Both the position numbers and the translations under genes were made by a program. The notes under the pieces are model-generated. The model was not told where the DNA came from. It saw nothing but the letters and a program-made list of their open reading frames with translations, and searched no databases. DNA of 63,311 nucleotides, the filler included, from Lenisia limosa (taxonomy: Eukaryota; Protista; Breviatea): assembly GCA_001655205.1 (NCBI GenBank). It is 10 parts of 10 records of this genome, joined end to end, with 100 filler letters (N's around TTAATTAATTAA, not from the genome) between each part and the next. Parts side by side here need not be neighbours in the genome. Positions count along the whole stretch, not along the records: positions 13,794 to 23,919 come from LPNZ01005872.1; 9 more parts are not named here. One strand, 5' to 3'. Numbering within the stretch: position 1 is the stretch's first letter; each line of letters opens with the position of its first letter. Positions 9,381 through 23,919 of the stretch are shown in pieces.

Positions 9381-12300
9381 CTACTTCGAAATGGGGATCT
9401 TGATAACAACAACGGCAGGTTGAGCCTTGACATTATCCTGTCATGTCAAATAAGATTTGTGAGGCATCATATTGATACTGTATTCCCTCTCATACCCATC
9501 TTCCGAGCCGAGGCTCAGGTCCGGTAGCGGCAACCAGGGTGCTTCCGTCCTTGGAGAAGGACAACGAGTTCACAAATCCGTCCTGGGGGGTCAAGAGGTT
9601 ATCCTTTCTCTTTGAAAAAACAAAAGCCACATCCATATACCACAGGAATCTCAGCGATCTGAGTGATCTTCTTCTTGGTATGTTCGTTCTTCCAGAGCCT
9701 GATGAATCCATCGCGACTCCCACTTGCAAGCATGTCTGTAAACGGCGCCGCCGCCACACTGAATGTCAAAAAGCTGGTGCTCCCCTCCCCCCCCAGTCAC
9801 AAAAAAAGAGACATCCCCGATTAACATTTGATATACATATTACGTGTACATATCTTATATATTTCACCCTCATGTTCGATTTATGCAGAAGTTCAACTTG
9901 TAACACGATGACAAATGGTGAGGGAATGATTGCTAGGCTCACCTTGAGATCCAGTTCTCATGTCCTTCACCGTGAGCATGCTTTACCGAAGCTGCGGGTT
10001 TCTTCTTTGACNNNNNNNNNNNNNNNNNNNNNNNNNNNNNNNNNNNNNNNNNNNNNNNNNNNNNNNNNNNNNNNNNNNNNNNNNNNNNNNNNNNNNCAGA
10101 CTGTGTCGACCTGAAGAATTTCAAACAATAAAATCAGTTCATAAAAAGTAACACAATATTACTGGTAGTAACCTACACTGTGCATTGATGATCTGAAAAT
10201 CAGCTGTGTTTCTTCCTCAATCTTCCACAGGCGCGCCGTGTGGTCACTGTTTTGTTAGCCCAAGAACTGAGGTTTAAGAAATCATCGTAGGACATCCAAT
10301 ACTAAATATGACAATGCAGATACATTTAAATTTATTCAGGAAGCCCTCTGGCAAACCTCGAGACAGACACGGCTCTTTCTTTGTTCATTGCATGAACACT
10401 GTACACAGGACTCTGATGGCCAAAGAGCGTTTCAATGAATGACAGGCCGTCCCCATTCCAAACCTAAACATATTACCCATTACAGTCGCATCCACAATGA
10501 TAGTGTCATCATGAAAAAATACTAACCCATCCAACCTTAACCAAAAGATCTTCACCACATGACATAAACATCTTCGATCCTGAACGGAAGCAGATGCCCT
10601 AAAAATGTGTAAAAAAAACTATTATACCCCACAAAGGAATCTTTTAACCGAGTGCAGATTTAAAACATTCTTCTCTTTGAACCCCAATCTTACGTTAACA
10701 GCTGATTTATGGGCTCTAAGACGGGCCGCAATTTTGGTCTCACCAACGTTCCAACATCTTAAAAGATAAATGATAATGACAGGACTTGTCAAAACACCAT
10801 GTCACTTGGTGAAAATTCCAATCATTAGAACTCANNNNNNNNNNNNNNNNNNNNNNNNNNNNNNNNNNNNNNNNNNNNNNNNNNNNNNNNNNNNNNNNNN
10901 NNNNNNNNNNNNNNNNNNNNNNNNCATAAGACACTGCAAGGCAAAGGGGCTAAAGAGTCAGGGTGTTTCTTGACTTTTGAGAAGTTACGTTCCCCAGTGC
11001 TCACATGTGGCTTCACCGAGGCTTCTTCATCTATAAGAACCCTCATTTTGGTCATCGTCTCAAGGTTCCCTGGATTATAAACTTCTCTTTGATTCAAAAA
11101 GGACAAGAAGCACCGAAATTTCTCATAATAAATGATGGCCTTCCTGACAATACAATTGAACTATGCTTAACGAAAAGAGGGAGCGCGTAAGAAGGAAATC
11201 CCATTGCTCAANNNNNNNNNNNNNNNNNNNNNNNNNNNNNNNNNNNNNNNNNNNNNNNNNNNNNNNNNNNNNNNNNNNNNNNNNNNNNNNNNNNNNNNNN
11301 NNNNNNNNNNNNNNNNNNNNNNNNNNNNNNNNNNNNNNNNNNNNNNNNNNNNNAGACTGCCGTCGTTGGACACGGCGGCACATGTCACTGTTTTGTGGTG
11401 CGCTCTTCTGAGACGTTTGACTACCTCCACTCCATCGGCGTCAACCTGAAGGTCAAGGAAAGGAGAACCCTGAAAACTAATCCCTTAGTATTAGTTTGAT
11501 AGTAATTCATAGCATTATAGCGATATTCACTCTGCATGCCTCCCACCAGACAGACCAGACCCCCCCTACCTGCCGCCAATAATATTACAACATGCTAACA
11601 TGTGCTATGATATATTGGTAGTGATGAGAGAAAAATAGGCGATAATAGACCAGGATAAGCAAAGATTACTCAAATTAGTGCTGAAAATCCTTGACATACC
11701 TTTCCTGCAACGTTTCTCTGAAGAGTACCTGCTTCGAATAACTAAGAAGTCAGAACACGTGCAATATTTAGGGATTCAATGTGATTCAAATAAGACAGAA
11801 TTTCTCACTAAAATCCTGATAACTCAGACTTTAAATGCCATTTTGATAAAAAAAAGTGCCTATACATAAGGCAGTATTGATAATGAAAGGCCTATACATA
11901 GGGCAGTATTACTCGGTACCTACCGCAGCCTCATGAAGACGGTGCGAGATTGCATCATGGTCAGGGTCGCTCTCGTCCTCTTCTGACAGCGCCATCTGCT
12001 CCTCTCCGTCTGAGTCTACCTCCATTCGTCCTCCAAGCTGTTGGATCATTTCCCTGGCTGAGAGAGGTTAGTGAATTAATAAACAATCACACTAATATAG
12101 AGGCAACATAAACCTACCCATTCTTGCCCTTCTTTCATCAGCAGTTTCTTTCTCATAAATATCCTCGTTATCATTTCTGTCCTCTTCTTCCTTCTGCATT
12201 CTGACTCGTTTTTCATTGTCAAAACCGCTCAAAACATTTCCACCATCTTCTCCGTCGCTGATGATCTCATCATCGACAGTGTCCTCCTTGTTCTTTTTCT

Positions 12301-13749: not shown

Positions 13750-13794
13750 NNNNNNNNNNNNNNNNNNNNNNNNNNNNNNNNNNNNNNNNNNNNG

Positions 13795-15561
13795 TCTACC
13801 CAATAAACAACTTTATATCACCACGTACCGCTGCAGCATCAGGAACGCAGGTGGGTACTGCAATAATCCTCTCGAGGGTTGAAATGTGTGTTTGAAGCTG
13901 GAGCGATGTCAAAACACGGTAACAGTCCACAAATTGAGAACGAACGCAAAAGTTTCATCACCAAGTAAAGCCCCATCCCCCTCCCCGCAAGATATCGGTT
14001 ACAGTAAGGACGAGGCAAACCTCGGCTTTGAAGGAAGGCAGGAAGCTGTCAAACCATCCTCTTCGCTGGTCCCGGGGCAAGTCGCCGACAGTCTCCAGAA
14101 AGGCGGGCGCTAACGACAGCGGGGATATACACGCCTCCTACTAGGTAAACAGGCAATTCATAAGAATGTAATATTATCAAAAGAACTCTTGGAGGTGGCA
14201 AAAACTGTTGTCGAAAATAGGCCTACAGGCTCCGGTATATTTGACAGGTGAGTTGTGTCAATGACAAGGCGGGCCTGGGAGGTTAATAACCGAATACACT
14301 TGTGAGTGAAGTATAACGTGCATAGCAGGTGATATACGTCATTCTGAAAACTGACAAAAGACGCCCGCCCAGTCTCCCAAAATGAGAAAAAAAAAGAGAC
14401 ATTGCTCATTATTCTTATTTATTATTCCATATGCACCACATTCCCCCAAAGTCAGTATCACCCATTTCAAAAAAAGCCAAAAGGACGTACCCCCAGCATA
14501 CCGGTCTCTGCTGGGTGAAGTTACTCTGGTGGGTAAAGTTGGCGTGGTGGGACAAGGCTGGCATGATCTGTGTGGGAGAACCAATGGGATCGGGAGACGA
14601 GGATTCTTCGGAAATGGAGCTCTACAAACTGTTACGGTTGAAAGCTGAACCACGACTCTTCCAGGTAAAAAAAAAAGAGCAGTAGGCAATTTCGGAGTAA
14701 TAAGGTTTCCTATGGGAATGTGAGTGTACGGCCATTGCAGGTAGGTTCTCCTTTGTTCCCCTCATTCGCCACAAACGAAAGAGGTGGCGGGGTAAGGCGG
14801 GGATGGGAACTCAGCAACGCTTGGAAGAGCAAGAGGAGAAGTCATTGATCTCATTGAGGTGCTTCGTGAAATGGCAGGTCTCTCTCTCCTAGTTCGGATA
14901 AGAAACAAGAGGTGGAACCGGGTAATACACACGGAGAGGACTCAAAGAACAAAAACAGGCTTACAAGGTTGTTGAAGAGGGTGAGAGGTGCTCCTGTGTG
15001 AGTGGTTTGATACCATTAATGCTGTATTTTATGTCTGAGAGCTGTAATGAGAGGTCGTGAACCTGAGTCAATAAATAACAATTCCGATTCAAAATCGAAC
15101 AAACCAGTTGGAATAGCCTCGTATATTCCTCTGAATGGATGTGACACGCCTCAAGTTGAGCCTAAAAGGATAAAATAGAAAAGCAATTCGGAAACCAGGC
15201 GAAAATAAGGCCACCACTCACGCTTAATCTATCATATTCTGATTGCATTACATGTAGTCTACTCTCTTGCTGGGCGAGAACAACACCAGCTTCTTGTGAT
15301 TGGATATGAAGGTCTAAAAACTCCTCCTGTGCAGGTAAATATCATGTGTCTCAATAAAAAAACAGAATAAATTGAAGAATACTACCATTTAGCAGTAAAG
15401 AGAGTCAGAAAAATGAAGAACATCAAATTCCAAAAGTAAAAAGGCACATAACGTCCAATCCATTCAGTAAAATCATTGCTAACATCGTTTACTTCTCCAC
15501 AGTTCTTTTTGCGGGTAAAAGAGCACTCCTCATCGGGAGTACGACGTTTCCTTAGCGACAT
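13795..15561 (-). CDS. Multi-exon hypothetical protein (3'-truncated)
   Basis: MSLRKRRTPDEECSFTRKK...; exons EEFLDLHIQSQEAGVVLAQQESRLHVMQSEYDRLS|AQLEACHIHSEEYTRLFQL|VHDLSLQLSDIKYSING with GT-AG junctions; coiled-coil-like; family unknown. Confidence 0.45.
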
Positions 15562-15885
15562 CACGTTCAGTTATTAAAGGTCTGTGTTGACGTAACACAG
15601 AAACCCAAAGGCCTGTGGAAACGTCGGTGAAAAAGTTGAGTTTCAGTGTATATGTCAAAAAGATCCAGTGAGTCCACAAATAAAGGACAAATTTATAAAT
15701 AACAGAGTCCTAAAGTCTGAAAGAGGAGGACACAAATTCGGACATTTTTTTTTTTTCGGGAAGGGGTCGGAAGACATGGTCCGTCTCCGAGACAATAATA
15801 CAAATGTGTTTCAGGACCAAACAGAAACGACAAAGTACCCGCTTGAATCGAATATTGTATACATTTCCTAGTTATAAACAACACA

Positions 15886-18274
15886 ATGTCGGATCCTTTC
15901 AACACAGTTAAAGAGTTTGCTCAAAACTGCCCATCTAACCATTTCTAGAGAGGTATCACAGTCGCTAAGCACCACAGAAGGTATATTTAGACGTTGGAAG
16001 GAGCTCTTGGAGACAACTAATACATCAACTAGTCAAGAGTTTAACTGGACTCAAAATGAGCTGCAATCAAACCTGCAGGGAATCGTGTATGATTTAGAGG
16101 TGAGTGGTTTCTCTCCTAGTGGGGTGCTTTTGAGGTATTTTCCTTTTCCTGCTAACTTTGAAGGATCTTGATGAGACTGTCAAAATGGTTGAGGCAAGTC
16201 CTTCGCGCTTCACGGTAAGGCATTTGTGTATTTTCTCATGACTTGGTAGGTATCACAGGAGGAAATACAAAAGCGGAAGCAATTTATCAGCGAGTCGCAG
16301 CGAGTTGTCAAGGTAAATCACTCATCATTTTCCACCCTGTCACACCTTTAGAAAATCCAGGACACAATGAAAGCCCCAGAAACCACAGTATGATTGGTGG
16401 CAGACCCTAAAGAACACACATTTTGGTACACATTCCTTTTGACTGCTGTAGCAAAAAATTGATAAGGACAGCCGCGATTCTCTTTTTTCTTCAAAGGTTT
16501 GTGGCTATGTGATTGTTCCATTGCCAAATGACCAAGCCTCTATCAACGTGTCGCTTTTAATTAAGGATGGGGTTTTTTGTCTTCTATTTTCTTATCATGA
16601 TGCATACAAGCTCTCCCTGCGTCATACTCCAGGCAAATGAGACCAAACTGAACCCAAGAGACAGGCTTCAAGATGTTGCCATTGCTGACAATCAAGACTT
16701 TATCAATAACCAGGCCGAACAACAACAGGTGTGGCATTGTATTGCTGGTTTCCATTACGCATATTTCTCACCATGTTCCTTCTTTCAGCATGTTTCAGTT
16801 TAGTATTACACATTCCACATGTGATATGCAAATATATTATTCATAGTCTGTATATCAGATAATATACTAATTATTAATATGATACCATTTACAATTACGT
16901 TATATTATGGGAGTATTTTTATTATTGCCATTTTTTATACAGGCATTGAACGAGTCGGAATCAGATTGTTATTTGATAAACCTTATTTAAATAATGAAAA
17001 ACAACAATTGAAAGAGAAGCCTTCTCTGATTATAATGCATATGACGTATTCAAACATTTGTCGTACAGTACTGTGCCACTATGCGCAGCTTTCTGTGTGA
17101 CATAATTTTTCAAGTTTATTAATGGCAGCCTCTTTTTTTGATTTCAAGTCACATCACGGATTTAACACGGCCCTGACCTTGGCCTTTGGATAACTCCTTT
17201 CTATTTATTTTCTGCACGTCTTACGCTTTTGTATAAATGCAAACCTTCATTTTTGTTTTCACCTGCTCTCTCTAGATGGTGATAGAGCGCCAAGATATTG
17301 AGTTAGACGAACTTGGTCAGACTGTCGGCGTCATTGGACACATTGCAAGGGAAATTGGAACTGAACTTGACGATCAAGACAGGTTGGCTATTTGTTGGGT
17401 ATTTCATTTGTGGTTGAGAATCTTGTAGTTAAATATGATATGTTTTTTTTTTTTTTTTTTTTTNNNNNNNNNNNNNNNNNNNNNNNNNNNNNNNNNNNNN
17501 NNNNNNNNNNNNNNNNNNNNNNNNNNNNNNNNNNNNNNNNAAATGGTAACAAGTATGAGAGCTTCACTTTCGGTTCCGAAACACCTGTAAAATAACTTGT
17601 GAAGCTCTACTTATTAGTATTAGTGACTACTATTTTATCGTTGGCTAAGTGAATTGACCCTCCCAGATTGTTGGAAAATTTAGACCAAGATATGTCAAGT
17701 ACAGGAAGCAGGCTCAAACACCAGGTTTGATTTTTACCGGATAGCCCTTTTTTTTTTTTATTTCTCGATGCTAAATATACATGTACGTAATATGTATACT
17801 TATACTATATTTGTAAATGAAAGAAGACAAGTTACAGCGTGCTCTAGATTTGAGGTTATTATATTTATTACTGGTGTTGCATATTTTTTTTTGTCGCTGC
17901 CAATGTTGATTAAAGACCCTAAACTTTCTATAATTTATTAATAAAGCCAATGTTTATTAGTATCACCCTCCATCTTAGGTTTTATCAGTATCACCCCTCC
18001 ATATTTTTAAGCATTCCAACATGTATGCTTGAGCTCTGATTTAATTGNNNNNNNNNNNNNNNNNNNNNNNNNNNNNNNNNNNNNNNNNNNNNNNNNNNNN
18101 NNNNNNNNNNNNNNNNNNNNNNNNNNNNNNNNNNNNNNNNNNNNNNNNNNNNNNNNNNNNNNNNNNNNNNNNNNNNNNNNNNNTGAATCCAACAAGGACA
18201 AGATGCCAACAATGACAATCATTTTCCTAATCATTGTTCTTGCAGTTCTGGGCTACTTTATTTATCAATCTTAA
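15886..18274 (+). CDS. STX6: Syntaxin-6/Tlg1-like Qc-SNARE
   Basis: MSDPFNTVKE N-terminus, DLEDLDETVKMVEASPSRF, SNARE motif RQDIELDELGQTVGVIGHIAREIGTELDDQ, C-terminal TM MTIIFLIIVLAVLGYFIY. Confidence 0.9.
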
Positions 18275-18723
18275 TTTAAACTGGCATGGCATCCTTATAT
18301 TAGTATTACTATGTTACACAAGGCTACATAAAAGGAGGAGTGTCTAATTTCTCACTATATACTCCTCCTAGAATTATCATGGGAACATGGAGGTGCAGTG
18401 AGTGTCAATCAAATAAGGCGAGGAGGATAACAAAGTCCATCAATCATTGATGAAGAAAATTATATGGAGGCAAGGGCCACCCAGAAGTCAGATTTTAGAA
18501 TTATAAATGGAGGTATTTATTAGAGAATTAGTTATTAATTGTATGATGGACAGAGATGAGCACTGAGAAGATGCAGGCAGATGGTGACAAGAGGAAAAAG
18601 AAAAGGCATGCACTCTTAACAAAAAGGTGGAATATATGCTGACAATTCTAAAGCACTAAACATATAGCCGCAGTGAAACCGTGTATGATTCGCCAGGGGG
18701 ATTTTATCCAGAGAAAAATGAAG

Positions 18724-19771
18724 TTAGGCCATGCGTTGGACGAGCTCGTTGATGTGCTCCTCGCGGTTACCGAACTGGCCACCCTCGATGAAGTGGTTGC
18801 GCTTCTTGTCGAGTCCCTTGGTGGGGGAGTTGAGCTTGAAGGGCCAGAAGAAACGGTTAACCTAAAAAAAAGTCAAAACGAACAATAAAAGAAGCGAAAC
18901 AAACCTCACGGAAGTGGGGACCGCAAGTGAAGATCTCGTGGATGAGGTCCTCAACGCAGATGAGTCCCTGCTTGCCGAGCTCCTTCTCAACGACGAGGTT
19001 ATCGACGATGGGAACGCGCTGGTGGTTGACCTTAGCGTATCCGCGCTTGTAGACAAGAGTGCGGACAGTCTTCAGAGAGGGGTAGCCGTAAGCGATGTAG
19101 GGCTCAACAAGACGGAGCATGTTGATGGTAGCCTTGTTAAGCTTAACGAAGACAGCGTTGTTGATCTGGAAACATTAAGTCAACTCTTATAATTCTCGAA
19201 CATACTCTAGATTACGATTAACCACTAACCTGACGGAGACGGAAGAGCTGGAGGATCTTCTTGGTACGAGGGTCAACACCGTTGATACCGCGAATACGGA
19301 CAACAATGGCGACCTTAGCCTCGGGCTCGACAAAGTAGTTGCCAGCAGCACGGGCAGCACGACGGCACTGAACGAGGTTGCGGGCAGCAGTGCGGTACTC
19401 CTTGGCGTATCTTTGGGCAGACTTGAAGATAACACGGCGCTTCTCCTTCTGGACCTTCGAGGTAAGAAGAGAAGACAACTTTGAATTTTCAAAATATTGG
19501 AACAAATACAAACCTTCTTGAAGGCAGCAACGGTCTTCTTCTTGGCCTCAGTCTGAGCGGCGACGCGCTTGCGGCGCTTCAGGATGGTGGGGGGAACCTT
19601 GAAGAGTCATAAGGCGAACAAACCCCTCAAAGAGGATGAAAACAATACAGGCTCAGTCGAAAGATGGTATATGAACCCTCATAGGTTTCAGGCATAAGGA
19701 TCTAATCAAGGCCGGCAAGCATGGCACAAACAATCATTCTAACTAACCTGTGATTCGGCCTTGGGTGACAT
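18724..19771 (-). CDS. RPL7: 60S ribosomal protein L7 (uL30)
   Basis: [75 protein letters not shown]; strongly C-ending codons. Confidence 0.97.
19648..19742 (-). ncRNA. Intronic box C/D snoRNA, predicted guide for LSU rRNA Am807 (yeast numbering; snR39/snR59-like)
   Basis: In RPL7 intron 1 (19598-19747): C-like box ATGATTG, internal CTGA (D') and ATGAGG (C'), guide ACCATCTTTCG, then D box CTGA. The guide is complementary to conserved LSU CGAAAGAUGGU, and the D+5 rule lands on the second A after G805. Confidence 0.85.
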
Positions 19772-19983
19772 AATGGATAAGTGGCGAACCTAACCTGTAA
19801 AGAGGAAGTCAAAAAGAAAATTTTTGGCAAAAAAGAAATTGGATGACCTGGTTCAGTTCAGAATACGAATTTAGATATTGTTTTGAAACGGGACCTTATT
19901 TCTTAAATTTTCATCGATAAATTTATATTTAATAATTAAAGCGTTGAATACAGGATTGCAGGATAGTTCACACTTCAAAGACA

Positions 19984-22900
19984 ATGTCAGCAGAAGATCT
20001 TGCCAAAGAAGCCTTACCTGAGGTTTGTTTGTCGCAGTCTTCCTTTAACTATTATTAAGGTCAATAAAAATGACATCAATTACTCGATGACTGCCTTTTG
20101 GTATCCTCTCTTTCGTGATCATACGTACAAGACAGTCTTCGTTCCCCTTACTAACACTGAGGCTCTTTTTTTGACATCTGGAAGGTATGCTAGTGTTGAC
20201 TTCCCACTCTTCATCCTTCGTACTTCTCATTTGCTTTTAGAGTCAGAGCTCCTTGGTTGGAGGATGAGGATGACAGGTTGGTCAGGTATTAGTTGAGAAT
20301 CTATAGTAGTGTAGTGTAATAGTATTTTGATGTATTTAAATGGGGGGGGGGTGATTTCATTTGTTCGCTGTGTTTGGTCTATTTTCGAGTCAATCTCTTT
20401 CTGGTGTGATTTTCTTGAGTATTATCCAATCCCTTTATTTTGATATATAATACATAGTTTTGAACACAAAGAGGTCAATATCTTGCGTTTCACCAATCCA
20501 GTGAAGATGAGTGGTCCGAAGGTGCATTGGAATATCTGAGAAATAAGAAAACGTTGGTGGAATACGTTTTTTACTAACACCCTTGCTATTCTTAATGCAG
20601 CTATTCTTAATGCATCCAGCGAGCCTATTGAAGAGAGTGAAAGTGATGAGGAGACTGAAGTTCAGGAGCCGGAAGTAAGTTGGAATGATGAGGGTCGTCA
20701 CCTATCAATCTTGCAGCTTTGTTCCCTGCTTTTTGTGTTGTGTAGGTTGAAGATAAATTTCTGCTTCACCCCCCCCCCCCNNNNNNNNNNNNNNNNNNNN
20801 NNNNNNNNNNNNNNNNNNNNNNNNNNNNNNNNNNNNNNNNNNNNNNNGTACTGCAATGGACCGACTTGGCAACAGGGTGTTCTGCAAGCTCACGTGGTCT
20901 GCTCCATCGGTATGCTGGAGAGACATACAATGGTGTGTGTGTGGGGTTTTATGACAAATGGGATGTGATAATAATGCATTTTTGTGAACACGTTTCCGCC
21001 AAATAGCTAAGAGACAGTTTTATCATTGCTAGCCGGTATCTAGGGATCCATATTTCTTTCACTTCCAAGGATGCCTCATGGATGCTTCCTGAAAAAACTC
21101 TTTGCAGAAGCGAGCAGGTAATTTTGTGTTGATAGTTGTCTCAGCTTTTTGTGAACTTCGTTTCAATTATTTGTTTTGACTGTTCTAAGAAGAGGAAATT
21201 TGGAATGAGGGATGGCTGTTCTGGTTGGACACATATATATTACACCAAATTGTTAACCATCAAGTGAAATTTCTCAAATATTCTTATGATAATTTTAGGA
21301 AATTGTTGAAGTGCTACAATCGTCGAATTTTGTGGCCCGTGATGTTCTTCAACCGTTGGAGGGGGGGAGGTCACCTAAAGAGTGGCAGATCTCAGGAATC
21401 TGATGATTAATAAATGAACAAATGTCCTTATCACCCACAAGGTACATCTACTGTCTGGATGGTACCGAAGAGAAGGACCTCACTTCCAGCATCAAGGATA
21501 TGGGTGAGTGAATACGCCTTGCTACGCCTTTGTTCTAGAGACAACCTTGGATTCCGATATGCTCTGGTAAAGGCTTCTATTTGATAGACATCTCTGGCCT
21601 GAGCGTTGTTTTCGTTACCCCCAACCCAGGTGTATATGGCCCTGGTCCCGTCAGTATCTCATCGGCCCCCACCAACGTGCTGGCAGCTCCGAGTGAGGAC
21701 GGGCCTCGTGCCATTATCACCCTCAGGAAGTTGGCGGAATAATGGGATTAGGGCCCTTATATTACATCCCATTACAATATTGGATATTATTTATCCCATT
21801 AATCCCCCCCCCCCCCCNNNNNNNNNNNNNNNNNNNNNNNNNNNNNNNNNNNNNNNNNNNNNNNNNNNNNNNNNNNNNNNNNNNNNNNNNNNNNNNNNNN
21901 NNNNNNNNNNNNNNNNNNNNNNNNNNNNNNNNNNNNNNNNNNTTAATTGGTGAGTGGGAGGAGGGGTTCTTTCATGTAAGTAAAAGCCAAAATTTTCTAC
22001 TTTTGCTTCAGCTCTTGGACATTTTTGTTTATACTGACACCCAAAGGTGCCTGTCAGAGAGACATAGCAACATACTACCCGGATTTCGCGGAGGAATCAT
22101 ACTGTGACGAGATTCGCTCGATGATCATCGCCTTCTTCAATAGCACTATTTCAGAAGTCTATCCTGGCTCTGACTGTGGGGGGGGGGGGGNNNNNNNNNN
22201 NNNNNNNNNNNNNNNNNNNNNNNNNNNNNNNNNNNNNNNNNNNNNNNNNNNNNNNNNNNNNNNNNNNNNNNNNNNNNNNNNNNNNNNNNNNNNNNNNNNN
22301 NNNNNNNNNNNNNNNNNNNNNNNNNNNNNNNNNNNNNNNNNNNNNNNNNNNNNNNNNNNNAAATTCCAGTTAACAGCAATTGAGCTCTTTTCGCCATGTT
22401 GTTTTCACCGCTCCCTCTCCTTCAGATGTTGTGGACGTCTCTGTAGACTCCAGTAAAGACAAGGTGAAGATCCTTGACTTTGGTCCCTTTGGCGGATGCA
22501 CCGATAGTTTACTATTCGACTGGATGAGCCTCAAAAAAACGACTTCTGATAGCGAGTGGGGTGGGGTGGATGGAGTATGTGATTGGGCTTTGTTTTGTTG
22601 TTCTCAACCCTTGTGTGTTGTCAGCCAACAGATTTGATTTGGGTTTTTTTTTTTGTTTCATAAATTTTCCAATTTTACTTCCCCCCCCCCCCNNNNNNNN
22701 NNNNNNNNNNNNNNNNNNNNNNNNNNNNNNNNNNNNNNNNNNNNNNNNNNNNNNNNNNNNNNNNNNNNNNNNNNNNNNNNNNNNNNNNNNNNNNNNNNNN
22801 NNNNNCTACCCACTACTCAGGGCTGCCGTTTGATTTGAGGTGGGATTCAAATTATATGTGCCTTGAAAAATAATTATTGAGCTGTTTTTTGAGGAGAAGA

Positions 22901-23007
22901 AGACTTCCTGTGTTGATAATTATAGAGAGACCAACCCAAATACTCTTGCCGAACTTGCGAAGCATATCCAAAAGACAAAGACAACGGAAGCTCCATCTCA
23001 AGCCTAA
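19984..23007 (+). CDS. CDC123: Cell division cycle protein 123 (eIF2 assembly ATP-grasp protein)
   Basis: YSMTAFWYPLFRDHTYKTVFVPL, KDASWMLPEKTL, QRDIATYYPDF, KVKILDFGPFGGCTDSLLFDW. Confidence 0.9.
22585..22692 (+). repeat. Intronic repeat family C (GGGCTTTGTTTTGTTG..TCAACCC..GTGTTGTCAGCCAACAGA..CATAAATTTTCCAATTTTACT-polyC)
   Basis: Homologous copies at 35822-35939(-), 47112-47264(+), 56939-57010(+), 58531-58618(+). Confidence 0.8.
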
Positions 23008-23444
23008 GGGATTATGGTATCAGTTTTGAGAATTGAGGTATGGTATTTTGATGTAATTTTATGAAGGCAGAGGTTTATTTGGTTGCTCAATAGGGTGATT
23101 ATAATACTGACTCTGGAGTTTGGTGGGCTCAGTTTCTTCCGATCAAAGAGTTCCTTTTTTGGATTACGTCCCATTTCTATTACAAAAAGTATCAGGCCTC
23201 ACTGAAATGCAAAATAAATAATGGGGAAACAGGGACAGAAAACAAGCACAAAAACAGAACAAAAAGACGAATAGTACACAAAACTGAAATCAAAACTACA
23301 CAATTTCCACTGCTGCAGGGGTGTGTGAAGCCACTGTCGAACACTGAATGGTGAAACCCACCAAATGAAAGAAGGAAGGCATACAATTGAAATAAAGGAA
23401 GGCATACAGTCTCAAATATAATCAAGTTAAGCTTCACTTCAGTA

Positions 23445-23919
23445 CAGATACAAGACGCTCGAAAAACCTTTTCCATCTTTATCCTGGATCGAAGAGAAAC
23501 CCAAACCAGTGACTCCTTCTCACCTGTGGCGGGAGTTGAGATTTGAAGAAAGCTGTCCACTGCTGTTCCACACCCTCCTTTACGTCAGCCTCAAAAGCTT
23601 CACGTAGAATCNNNNNNNNNNNNNNNNNNNNNNNNNNNNNNNNNNNNNNNNNNNNNNNNNNNNNNNNNNNNNNNNNNNNNNNNNNNNNNNNNNNNNNNNN
23701 NNNNNNNNNNACGAACCGAATAATCTGAAAAAAAACAAAACACGTAAGGAAATATCTACTTGCGAAAAACGGTCACAATGTTAACAGTAACCCCCAAACC
23801 TCAGCCAATTCTTCACCCGAGTTACCCAGCTTCTTCTTCTTCCGGACCTCCTCCACCAGCGGCACAGCAATGTCGGCAACAGGCTCGGCAATACTCCCCG
23901 TCATGGGGTATGAGACGTG
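23445..23919 (-). CDS. 3' fragment of an unknown multi-exon gene
   Basis: Exons ...AVPLVEEVRKKKKLGNSGEELAE| and ILREAFEADVKEGVEQQWTAFFKSQLPPQ|DKDGKGFSSVLYLY*. Confidence 0.3.

Follow-up and report, generated by a model that had tools for sequence, protein, structure and literature searches.

The first intron of the RPL7 (uL30) gene analysed here probably encodes a box C/D small nucleolar RNA (snoRNA), about 72 nt or, less likely, about 90 nt in length, which would guide methylation of the large subunit (LSU) rRNA at the adenosine equivalent to yeast A807. The gene lies in a window of 63,311 nt, the whole stretch of DNA that was analysed. The anatomy of the sequence, the non-random guide, its register relative to box D, and the host gene with its intron were all observed directly, and on sequence grounds these features make a box C/D methylation guide very probable.

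Host gene and neighboring genes

The RPL7 gene consists of five exons, with the Pfam domains Ribosomal_L30_N and Ribosomal_L30 on exons 3 and 4 and PDB uL30 chains matching exon 4 at an E value of 1e-38. Exon 1 runs from ATG to CAG. Exon 2 lacks an ATG and is preceded by an in-frame TGA at a distance of four codons, which makes exon 1 and intron 1 obligatory parts of the gene. The 150-bp first intron of the original prediction is confirmed by this gene model (19747 to 19598, GT..AG). The element reads in the sense orientation of RPL7 and occupies by far the longest intron of the gene, the other introns being 59, 64, and 43 nt long. The intron had also been described as long for this genome, which holds within RPL7 but not beyond it, since the D123 and syntaxin-6 genes need introns of a few hundred nucleotides, as judged from Pfam-positive exons more than 1 kb apart. 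The coordinates of all features are given in Table 1.

Two neighboring genes were recognized by Pfam searches with single exons. A D123/CDC123 gene (19985 to 22650, plus strand) is divergent from RPL7, the two start codons being separated by about 213 nt, and its first introns are very short (about 37 and 56 nt), with longer ones following. A syntaxin-6-like gene is located at 15878 to 17425 (plus strand). In addition, an interspersed repeat of about 95 nt was found in two copies with 89% identity, at 22589 to 22683 of the window and at 11026 to 11121 of the public contig L127 (ENA ERZ3820729 NODE_1206, 13,058 nt, from a metagenome assembly), and one of them overlaps with the 3' portion of the D123 gene region. 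The window contains runs of N at 17464 to 17540, 18048 to 18183, 20781 to 20847, 21818 to 21942, 22191 to 22360, 22693 to 22805, and 23612 to 23710. At these runs, which are 67 to 170 letters long, L127 reads 39 to 71 nt of real sequence, and every gap is flanked in L127 by a homopolymer of C, G, or T of 13 to 16 nt. Since L127 has real sequence where the window has N, this piece of the window derives from another version of that contig, with different gaps or masking.

Table 1. Features of the RPL7 gene and of its candidate intronic snoRNA, with the fungal-clade counterparts found in metagenome contigs
Feature	Position	Strand	Details
RPL7/uL30 host gene	18727..19771	-	Five-exon CDS, 243 codons, within piece 13794-23919
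RPL7 exons	19771-19748, 19597-19514, 19454-19230, 19165-18905, 18861-18727	-	Followed by TAA
RPL7 intron 1	19598..19747	-	150 nt, GT..AG, GUUAGU...AAG, phase 0, between Q8 and V9; host of the candidate snoRNA
RPL7 intron 2	19455..19513	-	59 nt, phase 0, two codons before KEKR; no snoRNA inside
Preferred snoRNA body (predicted)	19646..19717	-	72 nt; stem, C, 11-nt D' antisense, D', C', guide, D, stem
Alternative snoRNA body (original prediction)	19648..19742	-	95 nt, outer C box
Outer candidate C box AUGAUUG (original prediction)	19731..19737	-	Sequence reading
Terminal stem, 5' half, UGCCGGC	19711..19717	-	Rfam alignment; 6/7 pairs with 19652-19646
Inner candidate C box UUGAUUA	19703..19709	-	Rfam alignment to AUGAUGA consensus
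Antisense stretch upstream of D', GAUCCUUAUGC	19692..19702	-	11 nt; sequence reading
D' box CUGA (perfect)	19688..19691	-	Sequence reading
C' box AUGAGGG (degenerate)	19676..19682	-	Rfam alignment; fungal profile aligns AUGCUGU there
D guide ACCAUCUUUCG	19658..19668	-	11 nt antisense to LSU CGAAAGAUGGU; U19669 adds a G-U pair
D box CUGA (perfect)	19653..19656	-	One spacer base, A19657, after the guide
Terminal stem, 3' half, GCCUGUA	19646..19652	-	Rfam alignment
Fungal-clade RPL7-hosted snoRNAs	L005:3551-3641, L030:5932-6027, L053:2074-2169, L056:1928-2017, L046, L079, L109, L007, L003/L004		

Anatomy and size of the intronic element

Rfam scans of the whole piece and of the full contig returned no snoRNA match. 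When the 171-nt intron region was searched, the top family of 4227 was RF00134 (Z196/R39/R59), with 23.2 bits and an E value of 0.17; this score falls far short of the gathering cut-off of that family, 55 bits, and was counted against the element. The alignment to RF00134 runs end to end (model positions 1 to 84) and takes the inner UUGAUUA as the C box, and the guide and its register are identical to the RF00134 consensus. Two more members of clan CL00054 also matched and were suppressed as overlapping. As a check on the original prediction, which had proposed an snR39/snR59-like RNA, the Rfam comparison cuts both ways: the best family is Z196/R39/R59, but its cut-off of 55 bits is missed with a score of 23.

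The four boxes that had been claimed, C, D', C', and D, are all recognizable in the intron but differ in quality. Boxes D and D' are perfect, C' is degenerate, and both candidate C boxes are imperfect. Each of the two matches at five of seven positions and keeps the UGAU core, and position 6 of both is U instead of G, the expected partner of C1 in box D, which was likewise counted against the element. The spacer between D' and C' is 5 to 6 nt long, and box D lies 55 nt from the 3' splice site of intron 1. A terminal stem with six of seven possible pairs (UGCCGGC/GCCUGUA) forms with the inner C box only. Its C-G, G-C, and G-C pairs abut the boxes, with a 3-nt bulge (CUU) before GA, which is the register of a K-turn. 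Folding energies were no more favorable than those of shuffled sequence (z = -0.16 and +0.79), as is usual for C/D RNAs.

The extent of 95 nt in the original prediction (19648 to 19742) is not the preferred one, as the Rfam alignment and the stem favor an RNA of 72 nt (19717 to 19646), which is probably the correct version. The longer alternative, an RNA of about 90 to 95 nt that starts from the outer AUGAUUG (19737 to 19731), has a long 5' spacer, and uses the inner UUGAUUAG as a D'-region motif and not as a C box, is the less likely of the two. It would have a C-to-D span of 85 nt, near the 67 to 80 nt of the fungal RPL7-hosted copies, and the first position of its C box is a purine, as in the consensus; the inner GAUUAGAUCC is like the fungal GACUAGACC motif located 15 to 23 nt past the fungal C box. 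However, as read from the sequence, the flanks of the outer C box and of box D cannot pair, the 5' flank of the outer C box pairs with box D itself in the fold of the full intron, the Rfam model picks the inner C box together with the stem, and a profile of the fungal copies leaves the 5' half wholly unaligned.

In an alignment with the fungal loci (A2), UUGAUUAGAUCC of the window (19703 to 19712) was seen to resemble the conserved fungal GCGACUAGACC motif 15 to 23 nt past the C box. The fungal profile did not align this stretch, and the likeness may be due to chance or may be a remnant of shared ancestry.

Another set of C/D-like boxes (AUGAUGG ... CUGA, closed by a terminal stem of 6 bp) was noticed at 18543 to 18642 on the plus strand, antisense just 3' of RPL7. 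As a second C/D RNA it gained no support from Rfam, and it is probably a chance occurrence.

Guide, target, and predicted function

The window contains a single copy of the combined guide and D motif ACCATCTTTCGNCTGA, and among 100 shuffles that preserved the dinucleotides not one matched it with up to two mismatches, which indicates that it is not a chance match. The guide pairs with the LSU rRNA by 11 Watson-Crick pairs and one G-U pair, and the LSU sequence concerned is universal in eukaryotes. The target, GGGACCCGAAAGAUGGUGAACUA, coincides with the binding site of the "universal" 28S primer 4283R and is present in all of the printed basidiomycete LSU sequences examined. The 11-nt guide complementary to the LSU that had been predicted is therefore borne out, with ACCAUCUUUCG at 19668 to 19658 and its complement in a universal site.

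By the D+5 rule, the site is selected by U19661, opposite the second A of CGAAAG, an adenosine that we take to be yeast A807 from our own alignment of the numbering. The predicted assignment to A807 agrees with this reading, and the register is that of the U32/U51/Z196/snR39-59 clan. The equivalent adenosine is A814 in Arabidopsis (guided by U51) and A1511 in human (U32A/U51), and the yeast guides are snR39 and snR59. The site is modified in plants, animals, and fungi, and it is guided in a cryptophyte nucleomorph as well. For the D' antisense GAUCCUUAUGC, the corresponding target sequence would read GCAUAAGGAUC; a search of viral_contigs for a eukaryotic LSU sequence on which to test it gave no match.

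According to the general biology of intronic snoRNAs, the lariat would be debranched after splicing and trimmed by exonucleases to the snoRNP. The short GGC/GCC stem would bring C and D together into a K-turn, to which Snu13, Nop56/58, and fibrillarin would bind. The 11- to 12-nt element ACCAUCUUUCG upstream of box D would then pair with the conserved LSU CGAAAGAUGG(U/G), and the snoRNP would 2'-O-methylate the adenosine opposite the fifth guide base (A807 in yeast, A1511 in human, A814 in Arabidopsis). With a ribosomal protein gene as the host, the output of the guide may be coupled to ribosome synthesis. Expression, processing, methylation, and the presence of the target in the organism's own LSU rRNA are what we infer from these features.

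The degenerate C and C' boxes, the subthreshold Rfam score, and the known mobility of snoRNA genes, which leave copies behind, would also fit a decaying relic or a chance look-alike that forms no snoRNP, with any methylation guided from another locus, but this is improbable, as the guide is perfect over 11 nt, D and D' are perfect, the register is correct, chance is ruled out by the shuffles, and an intron 1 about 90 nt longer than its neighbors in an otherwise minimal-intron gene suggests selection.

Relatives of the snoRNA outside fungal RPL7

In the plant family Z196/U51 (RF00134; AtU51a/b, Am814), the guide stands in the identical register to box D (CCAUCUUUCGN-CUGA), and the predicted target does not differ either. 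The element described here also shares the compact C-D'-C'-D arrangement and the terminal stem of this family. However, the element scores only 23 bits against the cut-off of 55, where the plant-type copy in contig L119 scores 88 bits, and its D' antisense is unlike that of the plants. Moreover, plant Z196/U51 genes stand in polycistronic clusters, such as the one in L119, and not alone in an intron of RPL7. That cluster, on the minus strand of a metagenome contig (L119:321-1234), contains Z194, Z195/SNORD33, Z196, and F1/F2-snoR5a, and all four are above their Rfam cut-offs.

In animals, human SNORD32A and SNORD51 (28S Am1511) share the target site and the clan. They are intronic in translation-related host genes, as is the chicken U32/U51 orthologue in EEF1B2, but the host genes differ from RPL7. 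The host of human SNORD32A is RPL13A. In the U32/U33 family, the guide for A1511 is in the 5' half beside D', unlike in the present element. The nematode family CeN109 has the same guide. The antisense of snR39b/SNORD2 (Gm805/Gm1509) overlaps the same rRNA stretch, but with a register offset of 2 nt that places the modification on a G, and snR39b in yeast is an independent gene.

Comparison with the RPL7-hosted snoRNAs of fungi

Yeast snR39 and snR59 reside in the second intron of RPL7A/RPL7B and guide Am807, and on this point the literature agrees with the original prediction. The snoRNA was reported in 246 of 263 fungi and occupies a conserved RPL7 intron position in 201 of the 246 (about 82%), the other 45 having it outside that position. 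The pairing of RPL7 with this snoRNA across fungi is thus already known.

Metagenome contigs were scanned for ACCATCTTTCG N1-3 CTGA. At least 120 contigs matched, most of them by chance in bacterial contigs, and among the matches listed RPL7 exons were located beside the motif in at least seven. These seven, the Cunninghamella locus (L005), and the L003/L004 pair make up the ten fungal-clade loci considered here. In eight of them, the codon aligned with residue 1 of exon 3 in the gene of the window directly follows the host intron; the junction reads cag/GCC AAC AAG GAG AAG CGC in the fungi and aag/GTC CAG AAG GAG AAG CGC here. Because both introns end before the same aligned codon, the fungal host intron corresponds to intron 2 of this gene.

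The element shares several features with fungal snR39/59 (RF01197). The host gene RPL7/uL30, the strand, and intronic biogenesis are common to both, as are the 11-nt antisense ACCAUCUUUCG, the LSU helix, and the clan CL00054, and the Am807 target given in the literature is the D+5 target here. Nevertheless, the fungal host intron is in phase 0 right before the (A/V)(N/Q)KEKR codons, whereas the snoRNA here is one intron upstream. Box D is 2 nt nearer to the guide, with UCGA-CUGA in contrast to UCGG(G/A)N-CUGA in all ten of the fungal-clade copies found and in the consensus of RF01197. The window has no alignment to the GACUAG...GAUGCUGUCGC core of the fungi, and the RNA is shorter than the fungal ones if the inner C box is used. 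A profile built from eight fungal copies scored 10.6 bits against the window, covering only C'-guide-D (model positions 51 to 87) with a 2-nt deletion before D; the same profile scored 10.4 bits against plant Z196, and other unlinked A807-type snoRNAs were comparable. The yeast-like pairing of the original prediction accordingly stands for the RPL7 host, the strand, and the antisense element but not for the position, as the snoRNA is in intron 1 and the 59-nt intron at the fungal position is empty.

Two further observations were made on the fungal copies. The ten fungal-clade copies found and RF01197 read ...CCAUCUUUCGG(G/A)N-CUGA, for which the D+5 rule points to the G805 equivalent and not to A807; this conflicts with the literature, which assigns Am807 to snR39/snR59 and Gm805 to snR39b. 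In addition, a locus of the fungal RPL7 clade at L003:3866-3997, identical in L004, is devoid of the canonical host intron (...ERKKASKAKRK... is continuous) and carries the snoRNA further along, in an RPL7 intron that follows ...IRIKG. As these contigs have the snoRNA in a later intron and are without the canonical one, relocation within RPL7 does occur.

In summary of its affiliation, the element would work like snR39/59, U51, and Z196, and functionally it belongs to that clan. It falls outside on three formal counts: its score is below the Rfam cut-off, its intron is not at the fungal position, and it is not similar to the fungal family over the full length.

Phylogenetic placement of the RPL7 gene

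The RPL7 exons were concatenated only in local scripts, for the calculation of identities and for tree construction. Exon-wise protein searches revealed no close relatives, with no identity above 76% for exon 4 or above 66% for exon 3, and the identity of full-length RPL7 was at most 63 to 64% (query with a separate-row exon alignment, 8000 candidates scored, then local BLAST). As nothing exceeded 76% per exon or 64% over the full length, no orthologous intron was available for comparison.

In the maximum likelihood tree of RPL7, all of the snoRNA-bearing loci of the contigs fell into a starred clade (97) with Cunninghamella and Rhizoctonia. The gene of the window was placed outside the fungal clade, among dinoflagellate and stramenopile-like sequences, with support values of 94 and 91, which were not starred. 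An approximately unbiased (AU) test of a tree with the window and the fungi as one clade gave a P value of 0.23, and the fungal position was not rejected. In the PDB ranking, plant uL30 was marginally at the top, which is not decisive, and the ESM Atlas returned generic uL30 clusters only. The organism is likely not a fungus. The "non-fungal lineage" of the original prediction is likely at most: the tree leans that way, but the AU test leaves room for a fungal position.

Origin of the pairing between RPL7 and the snoRNA

To put the pairing in a wider context, RPL7 loci outside the fungi were inspected. The motif is absent from RPL7 of the sponge Corticium, which has introns, of the dinoflagellate Durusdinium, which has one intron of about 650 nt, of Ectocarpus (over the part of the gene covered), of the intronless Pelagomonas, and of another intronless marine contig. 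The contig of Nannochloropsis is truncated upstream. The pairing is therefore not general among eukaryotes. Hoeppner and Poole (2012) found no intronic snoRNA to be positionally conserved across supergroups and described ongoing mobility.

Two explanations of the pairing have roughly equal odds. According to the first, which has close to an even chance, a mobile A807-type snoRNA of the U51/Z196 kind independently colonized an intron of a highly expressed ribosomal protein gene, and RPL7 as the host is coincidental. This agrees with the mobility and the lack of positional conservation across supergroups reported by Hoeppner and Poole, and the register and compact layout are nearer to plant Z196/U51 than to the fungal copies, the intron is not the fungal one, and both the tree and the PDB ranking lean toward a non-fungal gene. 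However, to hit this very host among about 80 ribosomal protein genes, plus others, is a priori unlikely for a single event, an argument that is itself subject to the caveat that the finding was picked for exactly this coincidence.

According to the second, which is quite possible though short of an even chance, the pairing descends from the same ancestor as fungal RPL7-snR39/59, either because the organism belongs to an unsampled early fungal or holomycotan lineage or because the pairing is older than the fungi, and the snoRNA moved from intron 2 to intron 1 while its box D shifted by 2 nt. The host gene and the 11-nt antisense element are the same, the orthologous host intron survives as intron 2, and the AU test leaves room for a fungal position. 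Relocation within RPL7 has a precedent inside the fungal clade (L003/L004), and the snoRNA is off the conserved position in 45 of the 246 fungi. Such common descent is opposed by the lack of any sequence likeness beyond C'-guide-D, the register that differs from that of the fungal copies, the grouping of the gene with SAR-like sequences, and the absence of the motif from every RPL7 locus inspected outside the fungi (those of the sponge, the dinoflagellate, and the brown alga and the two intronless ones). The "very old or convergent" pairing of the original prediction is consistent with the shared RPL7 host, and neither origin is favored.

A stricter version of common descent combines a non-fungal organism with an RPL7 snoRNA that stems from the same ancestral RPL7 association as fungal snR39/59 and hopped to the neighboring intron, leaving the original one empty. 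This combination is rather unlikely.

Implications

At the level of annotation, the element described here adds one more probable U51/snR39-type snoRNA to those known. Intronic snoRNAs are used in the debate on how stable host gene associations are over deep time, and an equivalent guide that occupies a different intron of RPL7 in a possibly non-fungal lineage, with the "fungal" intron empty, bears on the age of the pairing. The RPL7 case also bears on whether the host gene, and not the intron, is the target of selection. Should the unlikely combination of a non-fungal organism and a shared ancestral association be true, it would represent an intronic snoRNA host gene association conserved across supergroups, which Hoeppner and Poole (2012) sought and did not find, and it would document the relocation of a snoRNA within its own host gene.
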